From contig JAHRHZ010000062.1 of the NCBI GenBank assembly GCA_024137785.1, positions 25,807,014 to 25,871,013 of the forward strand: a DNA stretch of 64,000 bases. Reading direction: 5' to 3'. Each line of letters begins with the position of its first letter. Position 1 is the stretch's first letter. This DNA is from Ginglymostoma cirratum (lineage: Eukaryota). The position numbers were made by a program, and so were the translations under genes. The notes under the pieces are model-generated. The model was not told the origin of the DNA, made no database searches, and worked only from the letters and a program-made list of their open reading frames with translations. This document shows, piece by piece, positions 1-44,600 of this stretch.

Positions 1-846
1 GTCCCATTCTTCTTTGGACGCCATGCATTTACCTGTGGCAACTATTCTTTGAACAATTCTACCAGTTGGTGGTTCAAGTAGTCCTGGCATGCATTTGTAA
101 AATATCTTAAAATGGTCAAATCATTGTCCAAACCATTTACTTGGGTGTAAGGTTTGATGAGTGGAATTCTCAGGTGAAAATAAAAGCAGTTCTTGAATTT
201 CAGAAAGAAGGAATTTTACCTGCCCAAATGATTTCAACTGTGAAACTGCATCTGTTTAATCATGATGTTCTGGCATTTCCAAGGTGCAATTTTTTCGAAG
301 GACTGGGTGAGAAGTCAGCATACAACCGTCCAACAGAGAGAGAATGTGCTGATGATGGACCTCAGATTTGGGAGGTCATCCACCAGCTCCAACGTGGTAA
401 GTAAACCTACCTTGGTGCAACTTGGAAACCTGTATTGCTGATGGCTAATGCTATCATTTTGCCAGGAGACCAATCTGTTCCCAATCGACTCCCATCATGA
501 GTGGCACGCAGATGGCTTTTGCAGCAAGAACATGGCCAGCGGTCAGGGAGAAATTGTACAAATTTTCAATTGAGTCCATTGATCTTGAATGGCAATAATT
601 TCTAGTCCAAGTGCGTTTATCTTTCAAAGCTAAACACAGCTCTAGGAAATCTCTGCACTTTCGCCAAATATATCAAATCATAAAAGGTTATTGCAAAGTG
701 CAAAATACTTGACCATTGCACGATTGAATAGCTTCCAGTGTTTAAGGGCTTGACGAAGGTCTAAAGGACTGCGGGTGTTGCAAAGCAGAAACAAAAACAG
801 AAGATGCTCGAAAGGGTCACCGGACCTGAAATGTTAACATGGATTT

Positions 847-1522
847 AGACAATAGACAATAGACAATAGGTGCAGGAGTAGGCCATTCGGCCCTTCGAGC
901 CAGCACAACCATTCATTATGATCATGGCTGATCATCCACAATCAGTATCCTGTTCCTGCCTTTTCCCCATAACCCTTGATTCCATTATCAATAACAGCTC
1001 TATCCATCTCTTTCTTGAAAGTATCCAGAGACTTGGCCTCCAGTGCCTTCTGGGGCTGAGCATTCCATATGTCCGCCACTCTCTAGGTGAAGACGTTTTT
1101 CCTCAGCTCTGTTCTAAATGGCCCACCCCTTATTTTTAAACTGTGTCCTCTGGTTCTGTACTCACCCATCAGCAGAAACATGCTCCTTGCCTCCAGAGTG
1201 TCCAATCCCTTAATAATCTTGTACGTCTCAATCAGATCCCCTCTCATCCTTCTAAACTCAAGTGTATACAAGCCCAGTCGCTCCAATCTTTCAACATATG
1301 GTAGACCCGCCATTCCGGGCATTAGCCTCGTGAACCTACGCTGCACTCCCTCAATAGCGAGAATGTCCTTCCTCAAATTTGCAGACGAAAACTGCACACA
1401 GTATTCCAGGTGCGGTCTCACCAGAGCCCTGTACAGCTGCAGAAGGACCTCTTTGCTCCTGTACTCAATTCCTCTTGTTATGAAGGCCAGCATGCCATTA
1501 GCTTTCTTCACTGCCTGCTGTA
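847..1522 (-). mobile_element. 5'-truncated CR1 LINE (3' end of ORF2 plus tail)
   Basis: LYRALVRPHLEYCVQF...RMRGDLIETYKI; (AGACAAT)n tail. Absent from the paralogous site near 4545. Confidence 0.95.
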
Positions 1523-2351
1523 TTCTCTGATTTCTCTTCACTCATGTTACCAGATCTGGTGAGCTTCTCCCAGAAACTTCTCTTTTCGTTTAAGGGCTTG
1601 ATCTTGTGTGTGCAAATTCTGTTCAGTGAGTGATTTTGGAGTTAATGACAGAAGCTTATATTTGAGAGCTGATTGTTGGGAATTAGATGGTGGGGATGTG
1701 GTGAATGGGCTGAATGGTATAGTTGGCATGGATGCCCTCTCCACATGAATTGAGTTACATGGACAACTTGAGTGAGATTGGTAATGTTCTTCCTGAACAG
1801 ATGCTATGGTCTTGGAACAACATTCTGAAATTCAGCTGATCTCTTTCTATTAGCTTCTAAAAACCTGTGTGAATACTACGTGCTCCCCTCAGAACACAGC
1901 ACATTGCTCCTTTTTAATTTCTCCACCTGGATCTCTCATTCTGTGCCTAGTGAAAAGCTTAGTGATTTCTCTGTCACACATTTTAACCATTGGTCGAAAT
2001 GTCAGAGCACATGATTATTTCAGGAATGTGTGCACCAATGTTTGCAGTAACAATGTAAGGCCACTTAGGAGCTAGAGATCATCTTTAAGTAACTCGTGCT
2101 TCTCATTATATAAGGTCCTACTCCTGCAAGGAGCTAATGAACAAATTGGAGTTCGTTGACTTCACTGAAGTCAAAGAATGTAGCAGGTAGTGAAAATCCA
2201 CAACATGCCATTAAACACGTACTCTCATCTCAATTTACCTTAATTGAAAAGGGCTTTGCCGAATTGCATGGACAGAGTTTTGCATTAGTTCTGGTCTCAC
2301 AGCCAAAAATTACTTATTAATTGGTAACATTTTTAAATAATGATAACGCAC

Positions 2352-2432
2352 CGTTCTGTTTTGATTGATGCTGTGCACCTTCTTCGGAATTCGTAGCAGA
2401 ATTTTGTTGCGTTTCAGTTGCTGCCAGTAGTT
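2352..2432 (-). other. 81-nt phase 1-1 exon-like unit, splice sites intact (ELLAATETQQNSATNSEEGAQHQSKQN)
   Basis: TATAG acceptor, GTGCGT donor, open frame; homologous to four other copies. Confidence 0.55.
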
Positions 2433-3349
2433 CTATATCAAAATAAAAATAGAAGATGTGCAAAATAAGCTCTGGAATATAAGGGAGTAGAAAATGCCCT
2501 AACAGTGCTTTTGTGCAAGAATGAAGTTCACCTGTTAATTTGAGCTCAGTACAATGAATGCAATAATTGGGTGATATAAGTGTCCTGAAATGAAATTTCT
2601 CCATATCGTATCGTGGTCAAATTATTATACAAATCATGTTGTTTTCTGGAGGGACAGAACAGTGGATTTCTCAGGTTAAATTGCAATCAGTTGTTGATGT
2701 TGACAAATCTGAAATCTTGCCCGACTGTGATGCTTTCTATGAAAATACATCTTTTCAACTGTGATGTTCTGAAGTTTCAACAACCAAATTTGCTCAAGGA
2801 CAGGAATGCAACTTCATCACACAACAATCTGACTCTGACACAGAGAGAAAGGTGCGGAATTATGTCTATAATAGTTGTAGCAATTCTGCAAAGGACCAAA
2901 AGGAGTAATATTGTCTGAACTGTACTTCATTCCTGCATTTTTTGAACAACAGGATGGTCGTTAATCAGGTCAGAGCAGAACCTCATTTTCAAAAGAATTT
3001 GTCCAATCTGTTCAGTAACAATATGAGGCCACTGTACGAGTTGGAGATTGTGTTTTGGTAACTTTTACTTCTTGCAGTATAAGATCCTGCTGATGCATGA
3101 AGCCAATGGGCAGAATGCATTTCATTGACAGAAAAGTGAGGTCCGGTGTGTCAGCAGGGAGCAAAAATGCACAGTGTGTCTTATCATGAAAGAGCAACGA
3201 TAAAAACATACAGAAATGTCAATAATAAGTTTCCAGGGCTTGATCAAATTCAATCGTTATAGTTTTGCATTAGATCAGGTACTTCACTGAGATAATTATC
3301 TATAATTGTTGCCGATAACTGTTCACACTTTTAAAACATAACATCTCAA

Positions 3350-3430
3350 CTTGCTTGTTCGGATCATCCTCCTCAGCTTGCTTTGTATTCATGGCATTAC
3401 TTTGTGTATTCTCAGTGTCATCCACGGAAC
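3350..3430 (-). pseudogene. 81-nt exon-like unit, donor lost (GSVDDTENTQSNAMNTKQAEEDDPNKQ)
   Basis: GTAG acceptor and open frame, but the donor position reads TTGAGA. Confidence 0.5.
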
Positions 3431-5978
3431 CTACATCCTCACAAAAGTACAAGGTGGACAGCATAAGCCCAGTTACATAAGGAAGTAGAAACTGCAGCGT
3501 TAATGCTTTTGTGTGATCATAAATTCCACACATGTTCATTTGAGCTCAGGCCAACAATATCTATGGACCAGTGAGACTTATTTTCAGATGGGTGCTGCAT
3601 TAATGTTCTCTCAGTTATTGCAGAGCTGCTGGTCACTGTGTGTATCACGTCCCATTCTTCTTTGGACACCATGCATTTACCTGTGGCAACTATTCTTTGA
3701 ACAATTCTGTAACTTGGTGATGCAAATGGTCCTGGCATGCATTTGTAAAGTATCTTGAAGTGGTCAAATCATTGTACAAACCATGTACTTGGGTGTAAAG
3801 ATTGATGAGTGGAATTCTCAGGCAAAAATGAAAGCAGTTTTTGAATTTGAGAAAGAAGTAATTTTACCTTGCTCAAATGATTTCAACTGTGAAACTGCAT
3901 CTGTTTAATCATGATGTTCTGGCATTTCCAATGTTGGATTTGCTCAAGGACTGTGATGAGACGTCAACACACAACCATTCGAAAACAGACAGAATGTGCT
4001 GATGATGGTCATAAGATGTGCACCAGTAGTGCAAAGGACCAAAAGGGGAGATGCCTCCTGAAGTGTGTTTCGCTTTGAATATTCTGGAGAATAGGGAGGT
4101 CATCCACCAGCTCCAACGTGGTAAGTAAACCTGCCTTGGTGCAACGTAGGAACCAGTATTGCTGATGGCTAACGCTGTCATTTTGCAAGGAGACCAACCT
4201 GTTCCCAATTGACTCCCATCATGAGTGGCATGAAGAAGGCTTTTGCAATAGGAATTTAACCGTGTTTCACGGAGGAATTGTACATAATTCCAATTGAGTC
4301 CATTGATCTTAAATGGCACTGCTTTCTGTACCAAATTCATTGATCTTTTAAAGTTAACCACAGCTCTGGGAAATCTCTGTACTTTGACCGATTATGACGA
4401 ATCATAAAATATTAATGCACAGTTTAAAAACTTCCAGTGTTTAATCACATCATAAACATCAAAAGCACTGCAGGTGCTGCAAAGCAGAAACAAGAACAGA
4501 AGATGCTCAAAAGGGCCACCAGACCGAAAACGTTAACTCTGATTTCACTTCACCAATGCTACCACACCTGCTGAGCTTCTCCAGCAATTTCTCTTTTTAT
4601 TTAAGGACTTAATGTTGTGTGTGCAAGTTCTATTCAGTGAGTGATTCAGAAGGTAATGGCACAAGGTTTTATTTGAGGACTGATTGTTGGGAATGAAATG
4701 ATGGGGATGTGGTGAATGAGCTAAATGGTGTAGTTGGCGTGGAAGCTCTCTCTGCATGAACTCAGTCACAAGGACAAATTGAGTGAGATTGTTGAAGTTC
4801 TTCCTTACCAGCGTTCATGGTCTTGGAACAACATTCTGAAATTCACCTGCTCTCTTTCTATTCGCTTCTAAACACCTGTGTGAATACCACTTGCTCCCCT
4901 CAGAACACAGCATATTGCTCCTGTTTTAATTTCACCACCTGGATCTCTAATTCTGCACCTCGTGAAAAGCTTAGTGCATTCTATGTCACACATGTTAACC
5001 ATTGGTCGAAATGCCCAAGCACCAGTTTATTTCAGGAATGTGTGTGTGTGTACCCTATTTTGCAGTAACAATGTAAGTCAACTTAGGAGCTGGAGATTGT
5101 CTTTAAGTAACTTGTGCTACTCTCAATATAAGGACCTACTCCTGCAAGAAGCAAATGTACAAGTTGGATGTCGTTAAAGCTCACTGAAGTCAAATAATGT
5201 AGCAGGTACCGAAAATGCATAATGCGCCATTAAATACATACTGTCATCTTAATTTACCTTAGTTTAAAAGGCCTTTGTCAAATTCCATTGTCAAAGTTTT
5301 GCATTAGTTCTGGGCTTTGCCCAAATAATTACTTTTAATTATTGCACCAAAGCTGGTTAGTTACTGAATTGTACCTGTGGGGGACCTCCCTATTCTCTGG
5401 AATATTCAACCATAAACATTCTTCAGAAAGCATTACCCCTTTTTGTCCTTTGCACTATTGGTGCAATTCTTGTGTCCCTCATTCAGCACATTCTCACTAT
5501 GTCAGATTGTTGTGTCTTGAATGTCCCATCCCAGTTATTGAGCAAACTCCATCTTGGAAACTCCAGAACATCATTATTGGAAAGATACATTTTCATAGTT
5601 GACATCATTTGGGTAAGTTATAATTCCTGGTAACTCAAATTCAAGAACTGATGTCATTTTCATTTGAAAACTCCACTGAGCTATATTGCAGAAAAATATT
5701 TGATTTGTTCAATGATTTGATTACTTTGAGACATTTTGCAACTGCAATGCAGGACCATTTGAATCACCAAGTTATAGAATTCTTCAAAAAATAGTTACAT
5801 CGTATTGACTGAGGTAAAAGAAGAATGGGATGTAATATGCATTCAGCTCTGCAAAGTTAGATAGAATATTAACGCAGCACTAATCTGAAAACTGGTGTAA
5901 TTTGTCTTGAGGTAAATTTGTAAAGATCTCATGTTACTGGGTTTACACTGAATATCTTGTATCTTTATGATGATGTAG

Positions 5979-6059
5979 AATCACAAGAGGTCCCTGAAAT
6001 TCAACAAAGTCATGCTTGGGATACAGAACAAGATACAGAGAATCAATCAATAGAGAAAC
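5979..6059 (+). other. 81-nt exon-like unit, splice sites intact, inside the inverted block (ESQEVPEIQQSHAWDTEQDTENQSIEK)
   Basis: GATGTAG acceptor, perfect GTAAGT donor, open frame. Confidence 0.55.
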
Positions 6060-7459
6060 GTAAGTTGCTATGATTTAAAAGTGTGGCCAATTAAGAAGAA
6101 ATCGTCTGGGTGCATTACCTGATCTAATGCAATACTCTCACACTGGAATTGGGTCATTGCCTGGTAAATTGGTACAGGTCTGACAGTATGTGTTTAATCC
6201 TTGTCTTTGGATCACAGGCTGTGCTGTACCATTTGCTACCTGCTGACTTACTTGATTTCAGGATGCTGCCAATGATATCCATGTTGTTCACTGGATGCAT
6301 GCATTAGCAGAACCTTTTATTGTGAGAGGCTAAAGTTACTTAAAGGCAATCTCCAGCTCTGATAGTAGGAGTTGTTACTGCAAACATTAGTGCACTCGGT
6401 TGCAAAATAAACTTATGCTCTGATACTTTGAACAAAAGTTAAACTGTGTGAGGTAGCATCCACTAAATTTTTCAGGAGGCTCAGAACTAGAGAACTAGGG
6501 TCCGCTATGAAAGAAGAAAGCCCTTGGTCCAGAAATCAGTGCCATTGAAAATGCATGAACTCAATTGGATATATGAATAGATTCTATCTAGCCCATGAAC
6601 GGGCTCTTTAATAGCCAAAGCCATCCTGAAGGCAGTGACAGCATCAGCATTCTGGGCAACCTCAGCCCATCAAGATCACTACGGTCGAATGGGGGAAAGG
6701 TTGGTCTCCTTGTGAAATGGCAGCCTCAGCCATGAGCAACACTGGGTCCAACATTGCACCAAAGTAGGTTTACTTATAATGTTGCAGCTGGGGGATGAGC
6801 TCTCTACTCATCAGAATATTCAAACCCAAAGCATCCTTTGGAAAGCATCTCCTATTTGGTTCGTTTGCACTATTGGTGCGAACCTAATGTCCACCATTCA
6901 GCACTTTCCCAATGTCAGATCGTTCTGTGCTGATCTCCATTCTTAGTTCTAAGGCAAATTCCATCATGGAACCACCAGTGCACATGATTGAAAAGATACA
7001 ATTTTGCAGTTGAAATCATTTGGGGAAAGTAAAATTTCTGTCTTCTCAAATTCAAGACCTGATTGCATTTTTGTCAGAAAACTCCAATGATCAATCCTTA
7101 CAACTAACTGTATGATTTGTACAATGATTTGACCACTTCAAGACATTTCACATTTGCATGCCAGGACCATTTGAATCACTGTGACATATAATTCTTCAAA
7201 GAATAATTGGCTGAGGTAAATGTATGGCATCAATAGAAGCATAGGACATATGACACTGTGAGCAGCAGCTCTGCAGTACCTCAGAGAACATTAACGCAGC
7301 ACTCATAAGAAAATTTGCCTCATTTGTGCATAGATATAGTTGGACTGAGCTCAAATGAACATGTGTGAAATACATGAACACACAAAAGCATGATCACTGC
7401 AGTTTCTACTCGCTTATGTAGCTGAGTTTACACTATCTTGTATTTTTGTGATGATATAG

Positions 7460-7541
7460 AAACACTGATCGTTGCTAAGCATGAACAAAGCATTGCTGCA
7501 GATACAAAAAAAAGACACAGAGGATCACTCAAAAGGGAAAG
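7460..7541 (+). pseudogene. Degenerate exon-like unit (extra A in a homopolymer, no GT donor)
   Basis: TATAG acceptor, 82 nt, donor position reads ATAGAT. Confidence 0.5.
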
Positions 7542-8447
7542 ATAGATGCAATTATTTAAAACTAAGTGCAATTAAAAATAATTATCTGTGTGGAATAGGT
7601 GATCTAATGCAAAACTGTAATGATTGAATCTGTTGAAGCCCTGGAAAATTGGAATGGTGATGACAGTATGATTTAATTCTTGCGTTTGCATGACAGACAC
7701 ACTGCACATTTTTCCTGGCTGCTGTCTCAGCTGTCTTCACTTTTCTGTCAATGAAATGCATTCTGTTAATTGAATTCAAGTATCAGCAGGGCCTTATATT
7801 GCCAGAAGAATAAGTTACCAAAACACAATCTGCATCTCATGCAGTGGCCTCGTATTGTTACTGCACAGACTGGAGAAATCCTTTTGAAAATACAATTCTG
7901 CTCTGACCTGATTAACAACCGTCACATTATTCAAAAAATGCAGGACACAAGTACAGTTCAGAGAATATTTCCCCTTTTGGTCCTTTGCACAATTGCTACA
8001 ACTGTTACGGACATCATTCCTCACTTTTCTCCCTGTGTCAGAGTCAGATTGTTGTGTGATGCACTTGCATTCCAGTGCTTGAGCAAATTTGGTTTAGTAA
8101 CATCCAGAACATCAATGTTGAAAAGATACAATTTCATAGATAACATCACAGTCGGGCAAGATGATGTTTCAGATTTGTCAACATCAAGAACTGATTACAT
8201 TTTAACCTGAGAAATCCATTATTCTGTCCCTTCAGAAAACAACATGGTTTGTACAATGATTTGCCCACTTTCCGATATTGTGCAAGTTCATTCCAGGTCA
8301 TTTGAATCACCAAATTATTGCATTCATTGTACTGATCTGAAATTAACATGCGTGAATGTCATTCTTGCACAAAAGCACTATTAGCGCAGTTTCTACTCTC
8401 TTATATTACTGGGCCTACTCTGCACTTGTATTTTTATTTTGACGTGG

Positions 8448-8528
8448 AATCACCGGTAACAACTGAATCTCATCAAAAAGCTACTACGAATAAAGAAGAA
8501 GATGCAGAGAATCAATCAAAACAGAACG
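8448..8528 (+). pseudogene. 81-nt exon-like unit, acceptor lost (ESPVTTESHQKATTNKEEDAENQSKQN)
   Basis: Acceptor position reads GG; donor GTGCGT is identical to the 2352 copy. Confidence 0.5.
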
Positions 8529-8572
8529 GTGCGTTATCATGATTTAAAAATGTGACCAAGTAATTAAAAGTA

Positions 8573-8805
8573 TGGGAGGTGTGTGAGGGGATAGGGTGCT
8601 GGCGGGTGTAGGGTGATGANNNNNNNNNNTGGGAGGTGTGTGAGGGGATAGGGTGCTGGCGGGTGTAGGGTGATGATGGGAGGTGTGTGAGGGGATAGGG
8701 TGCTGGTGGGTATGGGGTGATCATAGGAGGTGTGTGAGGAGGTAACATGCTGGTGGGAATGGGGTGATGATGGGAGGTATGTGAGGAGGTAGAGTGCTGA
8801 GGAAT
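8573..8805. repeat. G-rich 47-bp minisatellite containing a 10-N gap
   Basis: Unit TGGGAGGTGTGTGAGGGGATAGGGTGCTGGCGGGTGTAGGGTGATGA starting at 8573, 8630, 8677, 8724 and 8771. Confidence 0.9.
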
Positions 8806-10511
8806 GAAATGGTAGGCTGGCAGATATGTGGATAAGAGATTAGGATAGGTTGAGGGGTTGAGTCGGGCGTTGTGGTATCAAGTTAGAATCATAAAGTCTT
8901 CAAGATCTACAGCACAGGAAAAAAGCCTTTGGCCCATTGAGTATGTGCTGTTCAAAAAGAAAACATCTGACCATTCTAACACCTTTTCAGGCATTTGCCT
9001 ATAGACTTGTTGTTCTTGGCATCACAACAGCATATTTAAATCATTCTTCAATCTGATGAGGGTTTCTGCCTTTTCCACCCTTCTCGGCAGTGAGTTTCAT
9101 ATTCCCACCACCCTCTGAATTAAAAATAAATTTCCTCACATCCCCTCTGGACCTGCTGCTCCTGACCTTAAATCTGTCCCCTGTTCATTGATCCTCCCAG
9201 CAAGGAGTTCTTTACTACCTTAGAACAGGGCATCATATTGGGGCAGATCCAGTTTCAGATCCAGTGGCTGGGGTTGGGGGCTGCTGGTGTTGGAACGCGA
9301 GCTTACTGATTTGTTGCAGACAAGCGTGAGGTCCTGTGGGGTCACATCTGCTGTTCGGGGACATTGGGATTGGAAATTAGATCCTGATCAAGTGTTTCAG
9401 GGCTTGGAAGGGGTAGTTTGTTGTGTCACCCCAGGAAACGGCTGAGGGGTCAGTGGAAATAGAATAGGTTTTGATCCTCAAACTTTTCCGGGGTAGCTAC
9501 TCAGCTCAGTTGAGTCTGATTCCTCCAAAATCATCAACTTTAAATATATTCTGTAGAATGTTCCAGGTGCAGGAGAATTGCCAAATGAAATTTTCAGTTT
9601 CATGGGAAATGTCCTCAGTCAGTTGGTTCAGGATTTCTATACAGTTCTGACTTGAAACCCCAATCTACACTTTCCAAGGATATCTCTCCTTTAGCTCACA
9701 GACAAGATTTCTCAATGACACTGTTAATATTTCCATAAACAGTTGAAATCACAATGTGCAGATTCAATTCCTGAATGGATGAATCATGATTTTTTCACCA
9801 CTTTAAATCATACAGAATTCATTTTATCACATTTATTGCCTCCATCATCTTTTGAACATGATTTTCCTTTCTTAGCAGGGTTTTGAATGTGCAATTACTG
9901 AGGTAATGTATGACTTGCCAGATCTCTGTCTTTTCCTGACAGTCGATTCCTGTCCAGAAATGTCCACAGTGGGAGTCATTTAAGTGTATGTATGTATTTT
10001 ATGAAATGCCCGGAGTTCTAGGCCTGTCTATTAAAGCGTCAATCACAAAGCTGAGCAAATATCTTGACTCAAGTGTGGAATAATTGTGATGCAATGATGC
10101 ATTCCTACGGTTGTCATCACATTTGGAATTTCCTTGAACACTGAAATTTATTGCAAGAAATTCCACATATCCTTCCGCAAAAGTAGAATTATTTGAGCAA
10201 TGATTGAACACCACAAAGGTAATTTTGGAGTAAATTCCATGGTATCTTGAAGAACCAAATATTGAAGAACCACTTCTGCCAATGTATGAAACTTGCTGCT
10301 TCAGGAATATTCAGGCCAGCACAATTAGAAGTCTACCTACAGTTAATGTCAATGGTGGATAACAATTCCGCATTGTCTGTAAGTTCATTAATGCAACATT
10401 TAACTGGAAATAGTAGCACCGATATGCGGACAAAAGTGTATTATGTTCAAACATATGAATATGTGTTCTTCTAATTTAAGCCAAAAGCACGCTCACTGAA
10501 TTACTGCACCT

Positions 10512-10594
10512 TTACAGCATCTGTTTACATGGTTTATTGTCATTTTGTTCATGAAGATTCACTGATAACTTCTCCAAAGGATGGAAGCAAAATT
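10512..10594 (-). CDS. Candidate terminal coding exon (EFCFHPLEKLSVNLHEQNDNKPCKQML*)
   Basis: Good acceptor (TTCAATTCTTACCTCCAG), open in phase 1 to TAA; AATAAA downstream on the minus strand at 10147-10152. No homology support. Confidence 0.4.
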
Positions 10595-10639
10595 CTGGAG
10601 GTAAGAATTGAATGATGACCATGAAATCATTGCCAATTA

Positions 10640-10830
10640 TTAGGGGAAAACCTTATCTGGTTCACTCATGTCTTTTAGGGAAGGAAATCTGCTATCCTCA
10701 TCTGGTCTGGCCTACATGTGACTCCAGACCCACAGCAGTGTAAGTGACTCTCAACTGCTCTCTGGGGAATTAGGAATGGGTAATAAATCCTGGCCTAGTC
10801 AATGATTTCTACATCCCATGAATAAACAAA
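10640..10830 (+). mobile_element. Partial SINE (same family as 59720-60007)
   Basis: GGTTCACTCATGTCTTTTAGGGAAGGAAATCTG...GACTCCAGACCCACAGC...ATGAATAAA shared with the other copies. Confidence 0.8.
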
Positions 10831-11303
10831 ACAATGGTGCTAGCAATAGGGAAGATCATCATTGAAATTAAACCTTCTCTTACGTCAGCAAGTATTGTAT
10901 TCTTTGGGTTAAACAAACAGCAGCTACTTCCAGCTGGGTGAGATGGTAGCGTTGACATGTGTGTGAGGTTATGGGTTCAGGTGGGCGAGGCAGTTGGGTG
11001 CAAGAGTGAGAGTTTGGTGACCAGATAAACAGACAGGTGTTTAAGGTATGTCAAACGTTTAGATCAATATCGGCTGGATTCAGCAGCGGCAATTGGTTTT
11101 TGGACCAGGTGGAGTTGAGTCATGGGGGAGTGTTTGGGAGATAAGATCCAGGCAGTGTTGGGACAGAGGTGGTAACGGTCAGAGTTAGAGGATATTTGGA
11201 TCGTAAACCTTGGATAAATTAAATAGATATCCACAGGTTAGAGTAGATATTAATTATCTTCCTTTCCTTGAGCAACTTTTAACTTGAGTGTGTCCAAACC
11301 TAC

Positions 11304-11399
11304 CCTCAGTTTCTACTCCAATCAGATTTTGTGACTCATCCGAAAGTTCCACTTGATTGTCAATCCCGACTTTACCTTTTGAGAGAGTGTCCTGTGATT
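11304..11399 (-). CDS. NCR3LG1: Cytoplasmic exon B (ESQDTLSKGKVGIDNQVELSDESQNLIGVETE)
   Basis: 96-nt open phase 1-1 exon, GTAG acceptor and GTAGGT donor; same length and phase as exon A, 344 bp away. Confidence 0.65.
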
Positions 11400-11647
11400 C
11401 TACATAAGCACAAAAATACACAAGAAATGTTGTAAACATGTATTATGATGGAAACTATAGCAACAATATCTTTGTCATTGAAAAATGCCTACATATTTAT
11501 TTCAGCTCAATGGTCATAGCTGGGAAGTAGTTAGGTGTTCAGTAGTAAGTCAAGGGGTCAATTGAATAGTTACATACAGGTTAGAGTAGGTTGTTAATTG
11601 GCTAACATTCCTTGAGTAACATTTAACATGAGTGAGTCCAAGCCTAC

Positions 11648-11743
11648 CTTCAGGTTCTGCCCCCATCAGATTTTGACGCTCATCAGAATGTTTCACTTGA
11701 TTGATACTACCGGCTTCAGCCTTTGAGAGGGGGTTCTGTAATT
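11648..11743 (-). CDS. NCR3LG1: Cytoplasmic exon A (ELQNPLSKAEAGSINQVKHSDERQNLMGAEPE)
   Basis: 96-nt open phase 1-1 exon, GTAG acceptor and GTAGGC donor; tandem paralog of exon B. Confidence 0.65.
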
Positions 11744-13718
11744 CTACGTAAGCACAAAAATACACAAGAAATGTTGTATACATACAGTATGTATTTAGTT
11801 GAGCTTAGTGGTCATAGCTGGGAGGTAGTTACATGTTCAGTGGTAAGTCAAGGGGCAAATTAAATAGTTGACCACAGATCAGAATAGGTTGTCTAACTTG
11901 CTCTGAGTAACTTTTAAGCTTAAGTAACAATAAACACTCCTGAAATAACAACTTTAAGGGACTTTTCTGGAGTGGTCACTCTCTTTTAACACACAGTAAA
12001 GATTTCTAAATGACACAGCTATTATTTCCATGAATATCTGAAGTCGTATTTTGCGGTTTCAATGCCTGAGTGACAAACAATGCTTTTATTTCCACTTTAA
12101 ATAGTACAAAAACATTTCATCACATTTGTTGCCTCTACCATCTGTTTCATCCATTAGCATTTTCTTTTCTGAGCACTTCTCTAGCAATGGCTTATTTGTG
12201 CATCCTTTTCTCTGGTACTGCTATCTTATGTGCTGCCTGGGTTTGACACTGCAGTCAAGCAAAGGAAAGATATTTCATTTGTAAAGATTACAGGCTTTTC
12301 TGACTCAAGTCTTCCAAACAAAGCAAGACATCATGGCAACACCCCTGTTCTTAGACATTGGCACTTACTTGGCTATGTTATCATCTGAGTGACGGATCAC
12401 AAGGATGGTTGCATCAGCCCATGCCATGCAAGGACCTGATAATTTACAGACCATATGTTGCCTAATCTGGTCTACTATCTCCAACACAATGGTACAGTTA
12501 GTATCAACTTTCTCCTTTCCTTCTGTTGCAGCATCAGTACTTGACTTGTGGGAACAAACATTTATCTTGTTGGGTCTCAGCAAAGCATAAAAGATGATTT
12601 TTTTTACATCACACGTATCAGAAAACTGATTGACATTTTAATCATATTATTGAAATCACTCAATAATGTATAGAGTTTTGGTGAAGTCATTTTATCTATG
12701 AATATTACCTTCTTGTTAATTATTAACACAAAAATAAATTAGGAAGAAAGAAAGACTTGCATTTTTATAACAACCTCAGTATGTCTAAAGATGCTTTAAA
12801 GGCAATGAAGTATTTTCAAAGTGTGATCTTATTAGCAATGTTGGAAGTATGGCATTTAGCTTCATTACAACAAGCTTCCACAAACATTAACACAATATCC
12901 ATCTGCAAAGTTGGTTAAGCAATAATCATTGTCCATAGCATCAGGGGAAATTCTGCATTTACAATCCCCTACCCTGACACAAGTACCCTCCTAATATGAC
13001 CCAACTGCCTCCAACCAGCCAACTGCATCCCTAACACACCCCCACCTGTTCGACAATTCCTCCAATGTGGCCCAACCCTGACTCATTCACAACCTGAGTA
13101 CCCATTCACCAACCTAACCACTTACCCACACAACCAACCTCATGCAACTAACCATCCACTTACGCAATCACTCACTCACCCAGTCAACCAATTACCCACC
13201 CATCTATTCACTCACTCATTTAATAATGTTAAAAGACTGGACCTATAAAGTTGCCATGTGATAATTGGTGTATAAACAGGGCCTGTCCTGTGCTCTCCCT
13301 ATTCCATTCTGACAGTTACCCAAGGAACGCTGTGCAATTCAGTGAATGTCAGGATTGTAACATCCCAAAAGCAATGTGCAGCAGCATTAAGTTGGGGAGT
13401 TTCCGAGTATAGCAGTAATCCACTCATCATTGTTAGTGCTCAGAGATTCAGGCCTGTGATTCAAACATAGATCACATTGCTTCATCATCATTGTCTCCAA
13501 ATTCTAGAGCACCCTAGCCAGGAGCAATGTGGGAATACCTTCATCATGCAGAGCACAGAGAGTCAACCTGAAAGCCCATCAGCACATTTTCAGGGGCAAC
13601 AAGGGGTGGATTGTAAATGATGGCCTTGCTAACAACTTCCATTGACCAAAAATGAACAAAAGAAAACAAATTAATAAAATATTGTTTCATTTGTTTGTAA
13701 ATTTACGGATTTTCTTAC

Positions 13719-19184: not shown

Positions 19185-19410
19185 TCTTAATAAAAACCAA
19201 AGGAACCGTGGATGCTGTAAATCAAAAACAAAGTTGCTGGAAAAGCTCAGCAGGTCTGACAGCATCTGGGAAGAAAAAATCAGAGTTAACGTTTTGGGTT
19301 AACGTTTCTGAACTGAGAAAGGGTCACTGGACCTGAAATGTTAACTCTGATTTTTTCCTTTACAGATGCTGCCAGACCTGCAAAGTTTTTCCAGCAACTT
19401 TGTTTTTGTT
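19185..19410. mobile_element. Palindromic Penelope-like terminal remnant
   Basis: Inverted arms (ACAAAGTTGCTGGAAAA ... TTTTCCAGCAACTTTGT); flanking near-direct repeat GTTCCT(T/A)TCCCAGT. Confidence 0.75.
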
Positions 19411-29055: not shown

Positions 29056-29110
29056 CTGATGTTGAAATGAATGATATAATACTGCAAAGAGTCCAAATTT
29101 TCATCTTCAT
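29056..29110 (-). CDS. NCR3LG1: B7-H6/NCR3LG1-like gene, exon 1 (signal peptide MKMKIWTLCSIISFISTS)
   Basis: Manual reverse-strand translation: ATG, basic N-terminus and hydrophobic core, 55 nt ending in phase 1 at G|GTGAAG. It joins the IgV exon in frame (G+AC = Asp, giving ...TS-DTMDLK). Confidence 0.8.
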
Positions 29111-41664: not shown

Positions 41665-44600
41665 ATTTTTTTTTATTCATTTGTGGGATGTGGGCATCAT
41701 TGGCTGGCCAGCATTTCTTGCCCATCCCTAGTTGCCCTTGAGAAGGTGGTAGTGAGCTGCCTTCTTGACCTACTGCAGTCCACCTGCTGTGAGTTGACCC
41801 AAAATGCCATTAGGGAGGGAATTCCAGGCACTTGACCAGTGACAGTGAGGGAATGCTGACATATTTCTGAGCCAGGATGGTGTGTGGCTTGCAGGGGAAC
41901 TTGAAGGTTGTGGTGTTCCTGTATATCTGCTGCCCTTGTCCTTTGAGGTGGAAGTGATTGTGGGTTTGGAAGGAACTGTCTGAGAATCTTTGGTGAATTT
42001 CTGCAGTGCACCTTGTAGGTAGTATGTACACACTTCTGCTATTGAGCATCGGTGGTGGAGGGAATGGATGCTTATGGATGTGGTGCCACTCAAGCGGGTT
42101 GTTTTGTCCCAGATGGTGTCAAGCTTCTTGAATGTTGTTGGGGCTGCACTCATCCAGGCAAGTGGGAAATATTCCATCACACTCCTGACTTGTGCCTTGT
42201 AGATGGTGGACAGGGAGTCAGGAGGTGTGTTACTCAACGCAGTATTCCCAGCTGACCTGCTCTTGCAGCTACAGTTGAGTTTCTGGTCAATGATAACTCC
42301 CAGAATGTTGATAGTAGGTGATTCAGTGATGGTAACACTGTTGAATGTCAAGGGATGGTTGTTAGATAGTTAGTAAAATCCAAAAGAACTGCGGATGCTG
42401 TAAATCAGGAACAAAAACAAAGTTGCTGGTAAAGCTCAGTAGGTCTGGCAGCATCTATGAAGGAGAAAACAGAGTTAACGTTTCGGGTCCAGTGACCCTT
42501 CCTCAGAACGGTTGGATAGTTATTGCCTGGCATTTGTGCTGAATGAATGTTTCTTGCCACTTATCAGGCCAAGCATGGATATTGTCCCGATCTTGTTGCA
42601 TTTGGACAGGGACTGCTTCAGTACCTCAGGAGTCGCCAATGGTGCTGAACATTGTGCAATCATAGCAAACATCCCCACTTATGATGGAAGGAAGGTGATT
42701 GATGAAGTAGCTGAAGATGGATGGGCTTAGGACACTATCCTGAGGAACTCTTGCAGAGATGTCCTGGAGTTCAGATGACTGACCAACAACAACCACGACC
42801 ATCTCCCTATATGTCAGAAATGACTCTAACCACCAGAGAGTTTGCCCCTAGATTCCCATTGATTCCAGTTTTCTGAGGGCTCCTTGATGCCAAACCTGGT
42901 TGAAGGCTGTCACTCTCACCTCACCTCTGGAATTCAGCTGTTTTGTCCATGTTTGAACCAAGGGTGTAATGAGGTCAGCAGCTGAGTTGCCCTGGCGGAA
43001 TCCAAACTGGGTGTCACTGAGCAGGTTATTGCTGAGCAGGTGCTGCTTTTTAGCACTGTTGATGACATCTTCCATCACATTACTGATGATTGAGAGCAGG
43101 CTGATGAGGTGGTATTTGGCCAGGTTTGATTTGTCCTGCTTTTTTGTGTACAGGACATGCTTGGGCAATTTTCTACATTGTCGGGTAGATACCAGAGTTG
43201 TAACAGTACTGGAACAGCTTGGCTAGTGGAGTGGCAAGTTCTGGAGCACAGGTCTTCAGTGCTATTGCTGGAATGTTGTCAGGGCCCATAACCTTTACAA
43301 TATCCACTGTCTCCAAACATTTCTTGACATCACGTGGAATGAATCAAATTGGCTGAAGACGGCTATGTGTAAGTCTGGGGACCACTGGAGGAGGCTGAGA
43401 TGGATCATCTTCTCAGCATTTCTGGCTGAGAAGATTGCTGCGAATACTTCAGCCTTATCCTTTGCACTGATGCTCTGGGCTCTTCCATCATTGAGGATGG
43501 GGATATTTATGGACCCTCCTCCTCCAGTCAGTTGTTCACTTGTCCACCACCCTTCATGACTGGATGTGGTAAGACTGCAAAACTTAGATCTGATCCATGG
43601 GTTGTGGGATCGCTTAGCTCTGTCTATCGCTTGCTGCTTCTGCTGTTTGGTGTACAAGTAGTCCTGTTTGGTGGCTCCACCAGGTTGACACCTCATTTTC
43701 AGGTATGCCTGGTGCTGCTCCTGGCATGCCCTTCTGCACTCTCCATTGTGCCAGGGTTGATGCCCTGGCTTGATGGTAATGATTGAGTGGTGGATATGCT
43801 GGGCCATGAGTTTGCGAGTTGTGGTGGAGTACAATTCTGCTGCTTCTGATGGCCCACTGTGCCTCATGGATGCCCAGTCTCGAGTTGCTAGACCTGTTCG
43901 AAGCCTGCCCCATTTAGCATGGTAATAGTGCCACACAACATGATGGAGGTTATGGAGGTGGGACTCTGTCTCCACAAGGACTGTGCAGTGGTCGCTCTTA
44001 ATGATACTGTCATGGACAGATGCAGTTGCAGCTAGCAGATTGGATGAGGTCAAGTATGTTTTTCCATATTGTTGGTTCCCTCATCACCTGCCGCAGACCC
44101 AGTCTAGCAGCTATGTCCTTTAGGACCTGACCAGCTCAATCAGTGATACTGCTGCTGAGCCATTCTTGGTGGTGGACATTGAAATCCCCCACCCAGAGTA
44201 CACTTTGAGCCCTTGCCATCCTCAGTGGTTCCTCTAAGTGGTGTTCAACATGAAGGAGTACTGATTCATCAACTGAGGGAGTACTTGGTAATCAGCCGGA
44301 GGTTTCTTTGACCATGTTTAACCTGAAGCCATGAGACTTTCTAAGATCCAGAGTCAATGTTGAGGATTCCCAGGCAACTCCCTCCCGACTGTATACCACT
44401 GTGCCGCCACCTTTGCTGGGTCTGTCCTGCTTTTGAGGAAGGACGTATCCAGGGATGGTGATGGTGGTGTCTAGGACATTGTCTGATAGGGATGATTCTG
44501 TGACTATGTCAGGCTGTTGCTTGACTAGTCTGTGAGACAGCTCTCCCAATTTTAGCACTAGCCCCCAGATGTTAGTGAGGAGGACTTTGCAGGGTCGACA

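Follow-up and report, generated by a model that had tools for sequence, protein, structure and literature searches.

The window, the whole 64,000-nt stretch of nurse-shark (Ginglymostoma cirratum) DNA that was analysed, carries a B7-H6-like gene on its minus strand. The exons recognised upstream of the repeated region were as follows.

29056-29110, minus strand: leader exon of 55 nt in phase 1, with the ATG at 29110 and the donor GTGAAG; the peptide resembles the shark-relative leaders P0005, P0006 and P0153
24322-24660, minus strand: IgV exon, 339 nt, phase 1-1; Pfam V-set, E 3e-8; 75% identity with bamboo-shark P0151
20011-20364, minus strand: IgC1 exon, 354 nt, phase 1-1; Pfam C1-set, E 3e-14; 70% identity with P0151
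13719-13817, minus strand: transmembrane (TM) exon, 99 nt, phase 1-1, found by hydrophobicity scan and sequence; 53% identity with P0151 residues 230-267
11648-11743, minus strand: tail exon X1, 96 nt; AG/GT intact; its 32-residue module has a motif of the ExxxL[LIM] type; 57% identity with the bamboo-shark 32-residue module
11304-11399, minus strand: tail exon X2, 96 nt; AG/GT intact

Pfam placed an N-terminal V-set domain before a C1-set domain, which is the domain order of B7-H6 (NCR3LG1)-like proteins, and the leader exon together with a single TM exon followed by basic stop-transfer residues gave the features of a type I topology. All internal exons were in phase 1-1. Judged by sequence similarity, the closest named relatives of the gene are B7H6/NCR3LG1; relatives at 55-63% identity in basking shark, Mobula and Scyliorhinus carry the name NCR3LG1-like. 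Binding of NKp30 is a trait of the B7-H6 (NCR3LG1)-like proteins and is putative for this gene. An in-frame stop follows 16 codons after the X2 donor. The bamboo-shark terminal exon had no homologue in the 64-kb window, which suggests that the 3' end of the gene lies further left.

Positions 1-8572 contained five diverged units of 1-2 kb, each with an exon-shaped core.

1-2351, minus strand: intronic part of unit A, with its homologue at 3649-5340 and a LINE inside; the array extends past the left edge
2352-2432, minus strand: core A, 81 nt with an open phase-1 frame; good polypyrimidine tract, splice sites AG and GTGCGT
3350-3430, minus strand: core B, 81 nt with an open phase-1 frame; acceptor AG kept, donor changed from GT to TT
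5979-6059, plus strand: core C, 81 nt with an open phase-1 frame; both splice sites intact (AG and GTAAGT); antisense to the gene
7460-7541, plus strand: core D, 82 nt, with an extra A in an A-run that breaks the frame; donor AT; antisense; a dead pseudo-exon
8448-8528, plus strand: core E, antisense like C and D; 81 nt with an open phase-1 frame; donor GTGCGT, with the acceptor changed by mutation to GG

The preliminary description of this region had reported exon-shaped 81-nt cores in units of 1-2 kb, four of five with exact length and an open frame, and this was confirmed for A, B, C and E, whose other reading frames were mostly closed; D measured 82 nt. Its count of splice sites also held, with AG/GT kept in A and C and defective in B, D and E. 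The strand of the cores required a correction, since three of the five lie on the plus strand, antisense to the gene, because the segment 5342-8572 (3.2 kb) is inverted. Core-to-core spacings were 1000, 1481 and 988 nt. The unit of core A occupied more than 2432 nt up to the left edge, including a LINE reverse-transcriptase fragment of about 650 nt (at about 867-1541) that interrupts its intron. As had been proposed, the array continues past the left edge: positions 1-370 matched 3649-4020 at 88%, so a further core is expected about 200 nt beyond it. When the window was searched with nhmmer, no unit copies were found elsewhere in the 64 kb. The cores were 53-79% identical to one another and the units 21-47% diverged; core B was unusually diverged from its positional twin D.

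The units and both 96-nt tail exons had in common about 120 nt of upstream intron and the acceptor. After the five units themselves, the next matches of an HMM built from the core units were the acceptors of X2 and X1 (E 0.0016 and 0.034). In the reverse test, the best non-self matches of an HMM built from the X units were the upstream 120 nt of all five units. These reciprocal matches upheld the earlier remark that the acceptor context of the cores is that of the 96-nt exons, and the link, as a sequence relationship, is real and exceeds chance. The units and the 96-nt exons probably descend from one ancestral unit.

The closest protein found was XP_043561701.1 from the bamboo shark Chiloscyllium plagiosum, which has been auto-named 'ribosome-binding protein 1-like'. 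Identities of 75% in V, 70% in C1, 53% in TM and 48-57% between X1/X2 and its 32-residue module indicate that the two genes are likely orthologous. The tail of XP_043561701 consisted of one 32-residue module followed by about 13 tandem 27-residue acidic/polar modules. This protein and its isoforms X16 and X20 shared with the window gene the IgV-IgC1-TM order, a 32-residue module of the ExxxLL type and 27-residue acidic/polar modules, and the array in the window occupies the corresponding position, 3' of the TM exon and of the exon(s) for the 32-residue module. The predicted isoforms X16, X18 and X20 differed from one another by whole modules. The residue at the module junction alternated between G, R and E depending on the preceding module, as the product of a phase-1 split codon would, so the modules appear to act as phase-1 cassettes across the isoforms; these proteins are automated gene models, from which one exon for each module is predicted. 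With 21% D+E and about 60% S/T/N/Q/G/K/P at a 27-residue period, the composition of the bamboo-shark tail argues for disorder.

When the cores were scored in register against the bamboo-shark modules with BLOSUM62, the p values against shuffles were 0.013 for A, 0.0045 for B, 0.0005 for C, 0.003 for E and 0.08 for D, and the scores also exceeded those of nearly all null windows. The best matches of cores A and E in a small database were P0003/P0151. A local search with an HMM of the bamboo-shark modules did not find the cores. The in-register similarity supports homology of the cores to the 27-residue tail-exon modules, and with it the modular-tail reading of the preliminary description, which has to be restricted in that C, D and E are antisense and that core A is the only core in the window that the gene could splice. 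The two loci also differed in several respects. The bamboo-shark modules were near-identical, as in a recently homogenised or expanded array of 10-13 modules, whereas the cores in the window have diverged to the extent given above. Unlike the bamboo-shark tail, the array in the window has three inverted and three splice-defective cores, and two exons encode 32-residue modules compared to one such module in the bamboo-shark isoforms.

Taken as a whole, the best explanation, which we consider probable, is that positions 1-8572 are the 3' part of the minus-strand B7-H6-like gene and hold an old tandem array of exon units, the counterpart of the bamboo-shark modular tail. Each unit would comprise an 81-nt symmetric exon in a 1-2 kb intron and would encode a 27-residue acidic/polar module that is probably disordered. 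All units are symmetric in phase 1, so any subset could be joined without breaking the frame and the length of the tail could vary; the predicted bamboo-shark isoforms seem to take in or omit modules freely. The anatomy, the homology, the inversion and the splice defects are established by the sequence comparisons, and for the nurse shark we infer both cassette splicing and the disorder of the modules. Most of the visible array at this locus is disabled, and we give close to an even chance that the nurse shark continues to splice core A and the units past the left edge. The available nurse-shark RNA consisted of two small contig-only runs, and nothing from either fell on the cores.

The comparison of cores with introns that had been suggested as a test gave a divided answer. 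Conservation was no higher in the cores (52nd percentile relative to the introns) and their dN/dS was 0.5-2.3. Under simulated neutral evolution, only 2-8% of runs left all four 81-nt cores free of stops, and the same four cores contained no indels, compared to flanks in which each pair showed 0.7-1.6 gap events for every 81 bp. The retention of length and frame is thus weakly to moderately non-random (p about 0.02-0.08 for stops and about 0.1 for indels), a modest effect. It is conceivable, and to be taken seriously although we lean away from it, that the array is wholly a dead relic of a former modular tail and that the protein ends after X2, at a read-through stop or with a terminal exon elsewhere. 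The equal conservation and the dN/dS values agree with such a relic, as do the splice defects in three of five cores, the inversion of three of five, the divergence of the units (21-47%) compared to the near-identical bamboo-shark modules and the in-frame stop soon after the X2 donor. A similar read-through truncation is known from chicken BG tails (PMC5938342). However, the acceptor of core A is still good and its donor usable, its length and frame are preserved, and the stop-free survival of the four 81-nt cores would be improbable under pure neutrality. Furthermore, the array extends past the window to where intact units and a terminal exon may lie, and the missing homologue of the bamboo-shark terminal exon again points to a 3' end further left.

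The homology between blocks changed strand at 5340/5341, and three features marked the ends of the inverted segment.

5330-5341, plus strand: left junction repeat, 12 bp, reverse complement of 8561-8572
8561-8572, plus strand: right junction repeat, 12 bp, with its reverse complement at 5330-5341
8573-8799, no strand assigned: G-rich 47-nt minisatellite with a 10-N gap at 8620-8629, abutting the right inversion breakpoint

When 5342-8572 was un-inverted in silico, a single seamless array resulted, in which the downstream intron of E met position 5340 and the alternation of long and short units was restored. The present arrangement includes an inverted duplicate of 1.9 kb with arms that were 79% identical and had 11 gap events in 1868 bp. 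With this count, and with the gap frequency in the flanks of the cores, the introns had been overstated as indel-rich. In the favoured explanation, the array would have grown as a two-unit higher-order repeat of one long and one short unit. The ancestral order would have been X2-C-D-E-B-A before the 3.2-kb inversion, with its 12-bp inverted junction repeats, flipped C, D and E, and point mutations would have destroyed a splice site in each of B, D and E. The exon birth and death proposed earlier fits a history in which units were duplicated both in tandem and at a higher order, one segment was inverted and three splice sites were lost. Repetitive arrays are difficult to assemble and the right junction is 48 nt away from the 10-N gap, so the inversion might instead be an assembly error, with a real array that is colinear as X2-C-D-E-B-A on the minus strand and has C and A as spliceable cores. 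We regard this as unlikely, because each junction is embedded in unbroken sequence and no N occurs between the two, arms of only 79% identity are not those of a fold-back artefact, and the 12-bp inverted junction repeats resemble a true microhomology-mediated event.

The preliminary description had also allowed that the exons belong to an adjacent paralogue. For the plus-strand cores this would mean that C, D and E supply tail exons to a second gene that starts left of the window, so that two tail-to-tail genes have interleaved tails, and core C with its perfect AG and GTAAGT on the plus strand is what such a gene would have. We consider it very improbable, given that un-inversion is seamless at 5340 and brings back the long/short alternation, that the minus-strand array reaches the left edge and would force a plus-strand gene to read through antisense units, that D and E are defective, and that the window showed neither a V nor a C exon for a second gene. 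Least probable, to the point of being hardly credible, is an ordinary non-genic repeat (a transposon remnant or large-unit satellite) with 81-nt frames open by chance, for although the units are equally conserved inside and outside the core and of low-complexity composition, copies are absent from the rest of the 64 kb, the intron and acceptor are homologous to those of the gene's own 96-nt exons, and length, phase and position equal those of the relative's tail modules with an in-register similarity beyond composition.

B7-H6 and NKp30 are among the oldest natural-killer ligand-receptor pairs, and sharks have expanded B7-H6-like clusters. Human B7-H6 (NCR3LG1) shares the IgV-IgC ectodomain and the single TM with the window gene; its tail contains signalling motifs as well as a Gag-like C-terminal portion and is not known to include a tandem micro-exon array. 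By analogy of design, the closest known counterpart is found in chicken BG, with its tail of 21-nt exons. Many small phase-1 exons, in which the first codon is split, follow one another in tandem to encode this tail; the number of exons differs among genes and haplotypes, and tail length is altered by alternative splicing and intron read-through (PMC5938342, PMC4046983). Chicken BG (of the butyrophilin/B7 family) and the window gene both encode Ig-superfamily type I membrane proteins of the extended B7/BTN family, and both have tandem small phase-1 tail exons. In contrast to the 21-nt heptad exons of BG, those in the window measure 81 and 96 nt. The modules are also unlike BG in being proline-, glycine- and polar-rich, acidic and disordered-looking, the introns of the units differ in being 1-2 kb long, and BG has an IgV domain only whereas the window gene has IgV and IgC1. 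As far as we are aware, the meaning of tail-length variation in chicken BG is still unresolved. If some shark B7-H6-like tails are built of freely combinable micro-exons, they would show a kinship of design with chicken BG and offer a second, independent system for studying how variable disordered tails contribute to functions of immune ligands such as sorting, signalling or spacing.

Repetitive tails were also present in other cartilaginous-fish relatives, several of them with several predicted isoforms. The shark gene models stand in public databases under misleading auto-names such as 'ribosome-binding protein 1-like' and 'retinitis pigmentosa 1-like 1', and no description of them was found in the literature. 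It is a speculative extension, and a rather doubtful one, that cartilaginous fishes have an undescribed class of B7-H6-like ligands with symmetric micro-exon tails (periods of 7, 27, 30 and 43 residues, depending on the gene), which would diversify rapidly by duplication, inversion and splice-site death, yield dozens of isoforms and parallel chicken BG independently; the 1.9-kb inverted duplicate in the nurse shark might in addition form a long hairpin within the pre-mRNA, controlling the use of downstream cassettes. The nurse shark itself has another member of the same ectodomain family, P0159 (UniRef 'Natural killer cell cytotoxicity receptor 3 ligand (B7H6)', Ginglymostoma cirratum), in which the region after the TM is a string of Ig-like domains without micro-exon modules. 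Compared with the bamboo-shark relative P0003, rather than with the window exons, P0159 was 43% identical over V-C1-TM.

The first 8572 nt of the window consist of repeats; BLAST separates them into ~1-2 kb units, some on each strand. Judged from its sequence, this region appears to be a genuine array of exon units that forms the tail of the B7-H6-like gene and is modular in the same way as its counterpart in the bamboo shark. The array is in a degraded state, with three units inverted and three carrying dead splice sites. The gene itself lies on the minus strand, starting at ~29.1 kb and extending leftward as far as the edge of the window, with these exons:

29110-29056, minus strand, leader exon
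24660-24322, minus strand, IgV exon (Pfam V-set)
20364-20011, minus strand, IgC1 exon (Pfam C1-set)
13817-13719, minus strand, transmembrane exon
11743-11648, minus strand, 96-nt tail exon X1
11399-11304, minus strand, 96-nt tail exon X2

AG/GT sites were present in all of these exons, and the internal exons were all symmetric in phase 1. Read-through from X2 would meet a stop after 16 codons of intron. A nucleotide HMM built from the cores with their flanks found exactly five copies within the 64 kb, and each unit contained one exon-shaped core:

2352-2432, minus strand, core A: 81 nt, acceptor AG, donor GTGCGT
3350-3430, minus strand, core B: 81 nt, acceptor AG, donor TT (lost)
5979-6059, plus strand, core C: 81 nt, acceptor AG, donor GTAAGT
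7460-7541, plus strand, core D: 82 nt, acceptor AG, donor AT (lost)
8448-8528, plus strand, core E: 81 nt, acceptor GG (lost), donor GTGCGT

The four 81-nt cores were open in phase 1, with the other frames mostly closed, and they encode acidic/polar 27-residue peptides. The preliminary description of 1-8572 as an array of five ~1-2 kb units with cores was therefore correct by both BLAST and HMM, and its account of an 81-nt length and an open frame in four of five cores, of intact AG/GT sites in two copies (A and C) and of splice defects in three (B, D and E) was confirmed on the sequence. Its placement of the cores held overall, except that C, D and E are antisense to the gene and the coordinates of B were slightly shifted. 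Unit A is thus predicted to be the only one of the five that the gene could still splice, and no other good phase-1 exon was found on the minus strand of 1-11303. The chances that core A is used today are about even. Two ~60-Mb contig-only RNA runs under the same species label contained almost none of the words of the window, and within 2300-8299 their coverage was confined to a short interspersed repeat at 4511-4602, which is evidence neither of silence nor of use. Copies of this repeat were seen near 19218-19410 and 42410-42500, and it stood in many different contexts in the run contigs. The intron of unit A also holds an inserted LINE reverse-transcriptase fragment (867-1541), with similar ones at ~15.5-16.2 kb and 39-41 kb.

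Behind the five units in the ranking of the core-unit HMM came the acceptor region of X2 (E 0.0016) and then that of X1 (E 0.034), both on the correct strand. Conversely, an HMM of the X1/X2 units matched best, apart from its own source units, in the 120-nt stretches that precede each of the five cores (E 2.6e-4 to 0.8). Because the matches are reciprocal, the 81-nt and 96-nt units share a common ancestor, and they bear out the acceptor context that had been described as common to the cores and the 96-nt exons. An acidic dileucine-type motif, E-x-x-x-L-[LIM], was kept in X1, X2 and the 32-residue module of the bamboo shark, whereas the 27-residue modules showed no comparably fixed motif. Intron sequence upstream of X1 recurs downstream of X2 as a 74 % direct repeat (9684-9877 versus 11979-12175). 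This repeat may be what is left of a third 96-nt unit, although no exon to go with it was found. Rfam gave no matches over 1-12000.

Long and short units alternate. Positions 1-2322 matched 3649-5340 in three blocks with 77-88 % identity, 2316-4210 matched 8564-6688 in inverted orientation with 79 % identity, and the strand of homology changes at 5340/5341. A 12-bp sequence that ends the downstream intron of E (8561-8572) is found as its reverse complement at 5330-5341, and from there onward the minus strand carries on the homology to the downstream intron of A. With 5342-8572 turned back, the array would be colinear, in the order X2-C-D-E-B-A, and would form a higher-order repeat of two units: (C,D), (E,B) and (A, next unit). 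Since 1-370 matches 3649-4020, the next core is expected ~200 nt beyond the left edge; the array runs off that edge, as had been proposed, and more units lie there. A G-rich 47-nt minisatellite at 8573-8799 begins exactly at the right inversion breakpoint and contains a 10-N gap (8620-8629), with 3.6 copies scored in 8630-8799 and partial copies before the gap. It may be the fragile site behind the rearrangement. The presumed pre-mRNA includes the 1.9-kb inverted duplicate (2316-4210 versus 6688-8564, 79 % identical), which could form a long imperfect hairpin with a loop of ~2.5 kb.

Homology searches were run exon by exon, without a spliced gene model. Against a representative library, the closest relative of the IgV exon was P0003, Chiloscyllium plagiosum XP_043561701.1, which carries the automatic name 'ribosome-binding protein 1-like isoform X18'. 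Its isoform P0151 was 75 % identical to the window in the V exon, 70 % in C1, 53 % in the transmembrane exon and 48-57 % in the 32-residue module. Word searches with the Ig ectodomain (candidates of 355-1129 and 150-478 residues) turned up no annotated protein of the window's own gene. In the bamboo-shark protein the 32-residue module is followed by ~13 modules in tandem, almost every one of them exactly 27 residues long, and isoforms X16, X18 and X20 differ from one another in entire modules. One and the same module begins with G, R or E, according to the module before it, which at the protein level looks like the signature of a codon split in phase 1. No homologue of the bamboo-shark terminal exon, whose product is an acidic end of 30 residues, was found in the window. 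A protein HMM of 12 nearly identical bamboo-shark modules gave only chance-level matches in the six-frame window and missed the cores. The cores were then scored against the modules in register and ungapped, with shuffles and null windows as controls. Of the null 26-residue windows taken from elsewhere in the window, only 0-0.03 % scored as high as cores A, C and E. Cores A, B, C and E scored above their own shuffles (p 0.013, 0.0045, 0.0005 and 0.003), and core D did not. Against a small database of all the proteins collected for the analysis, A and E matched the XP_043561701.1 protein best. Thus, the proposal of a modular tail with exon birth and death was upheld in its homology to the bamboo-shark modules, although most of the visible units are disabled here.

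A peak of conservation over the cores or their splice flanks was sought and not found: the core lay at the 52nd percentile among 81-column windows of the five-way alignment, and core-to-core dN/dS was 0.5-2.3. Within the 1.9-kb duplicate, no window was more diverged than the B/D core, at 47 % identity (median 80 %). As positional twins (3350-3430 and 7460-7541), B and D have flanks that are 79-83 % identical and cores that are 47-54 % identical. Core D resembles C; core B is unlike all other cores, yet its score against the bamboo-shark modules is good. The B/D divergence may stem from locally accelerated change or from patchy gene conversion. When neutral evolution was simulated with the core divergences as observed, 2-8 % of runs left all four 81-nt cores stop-free, so frame retention is modestly non-random. 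With MAFFT, gap events were absent from the four 81-nt cores, and the flanks had 0.7-1.6 of them per 81 bp and pair; by our own estimate, this difference has a p of roughly 0.1 on the tree. The introns had been called indel-rich, which was overstated, as the 1868 bp of the closest pair contained only 11 gap events. The comparison of cores with introns at most modestly favored retention of frame and length and gave no signal of sequence conservation. Such a picture would be expected if disordered-tail exons had been constrained in length and frame alone for part of their history, and recent decay could account for it as well.

The closest design to the shark array is the tail of chicken BG, with its 21-nt exons (PMC5938342). 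In comparison, the shark exons are larger, and their product is likely disordered, whereas that of BG is a coiled coil. Full-text literature searches on shark B7H6 tails found no description of modular shark tails. Repetitive low-complexity tails were also present in a neighboring bamboo-shark gene with ten predicted isoforms and in relatives from zebra shark, horn shark (several predicted isoforms listed), skates, rays and elephant shark. The period was 7, 27, 30 or 43 residues where clearly detected, and no Pfam family matched these tails. P0030, a B7-H6-like relative from Callorhinchus milii, has a proline-rich repeat tail with a 7/14-residue period, which adds a third kind of modular tail to the family. 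After the transmembrane segment, P0154, P0153, P0052, P0040, P0059 and P0159, proteins from catshark, smooth-hound, zebra shark, manta and skate together with nurse-shark B7H6 (P0159), carry at least one copy of a ~125-residue globular domain without a clean Pfam match. In several of them this domain alternates with acidic repeat modules.
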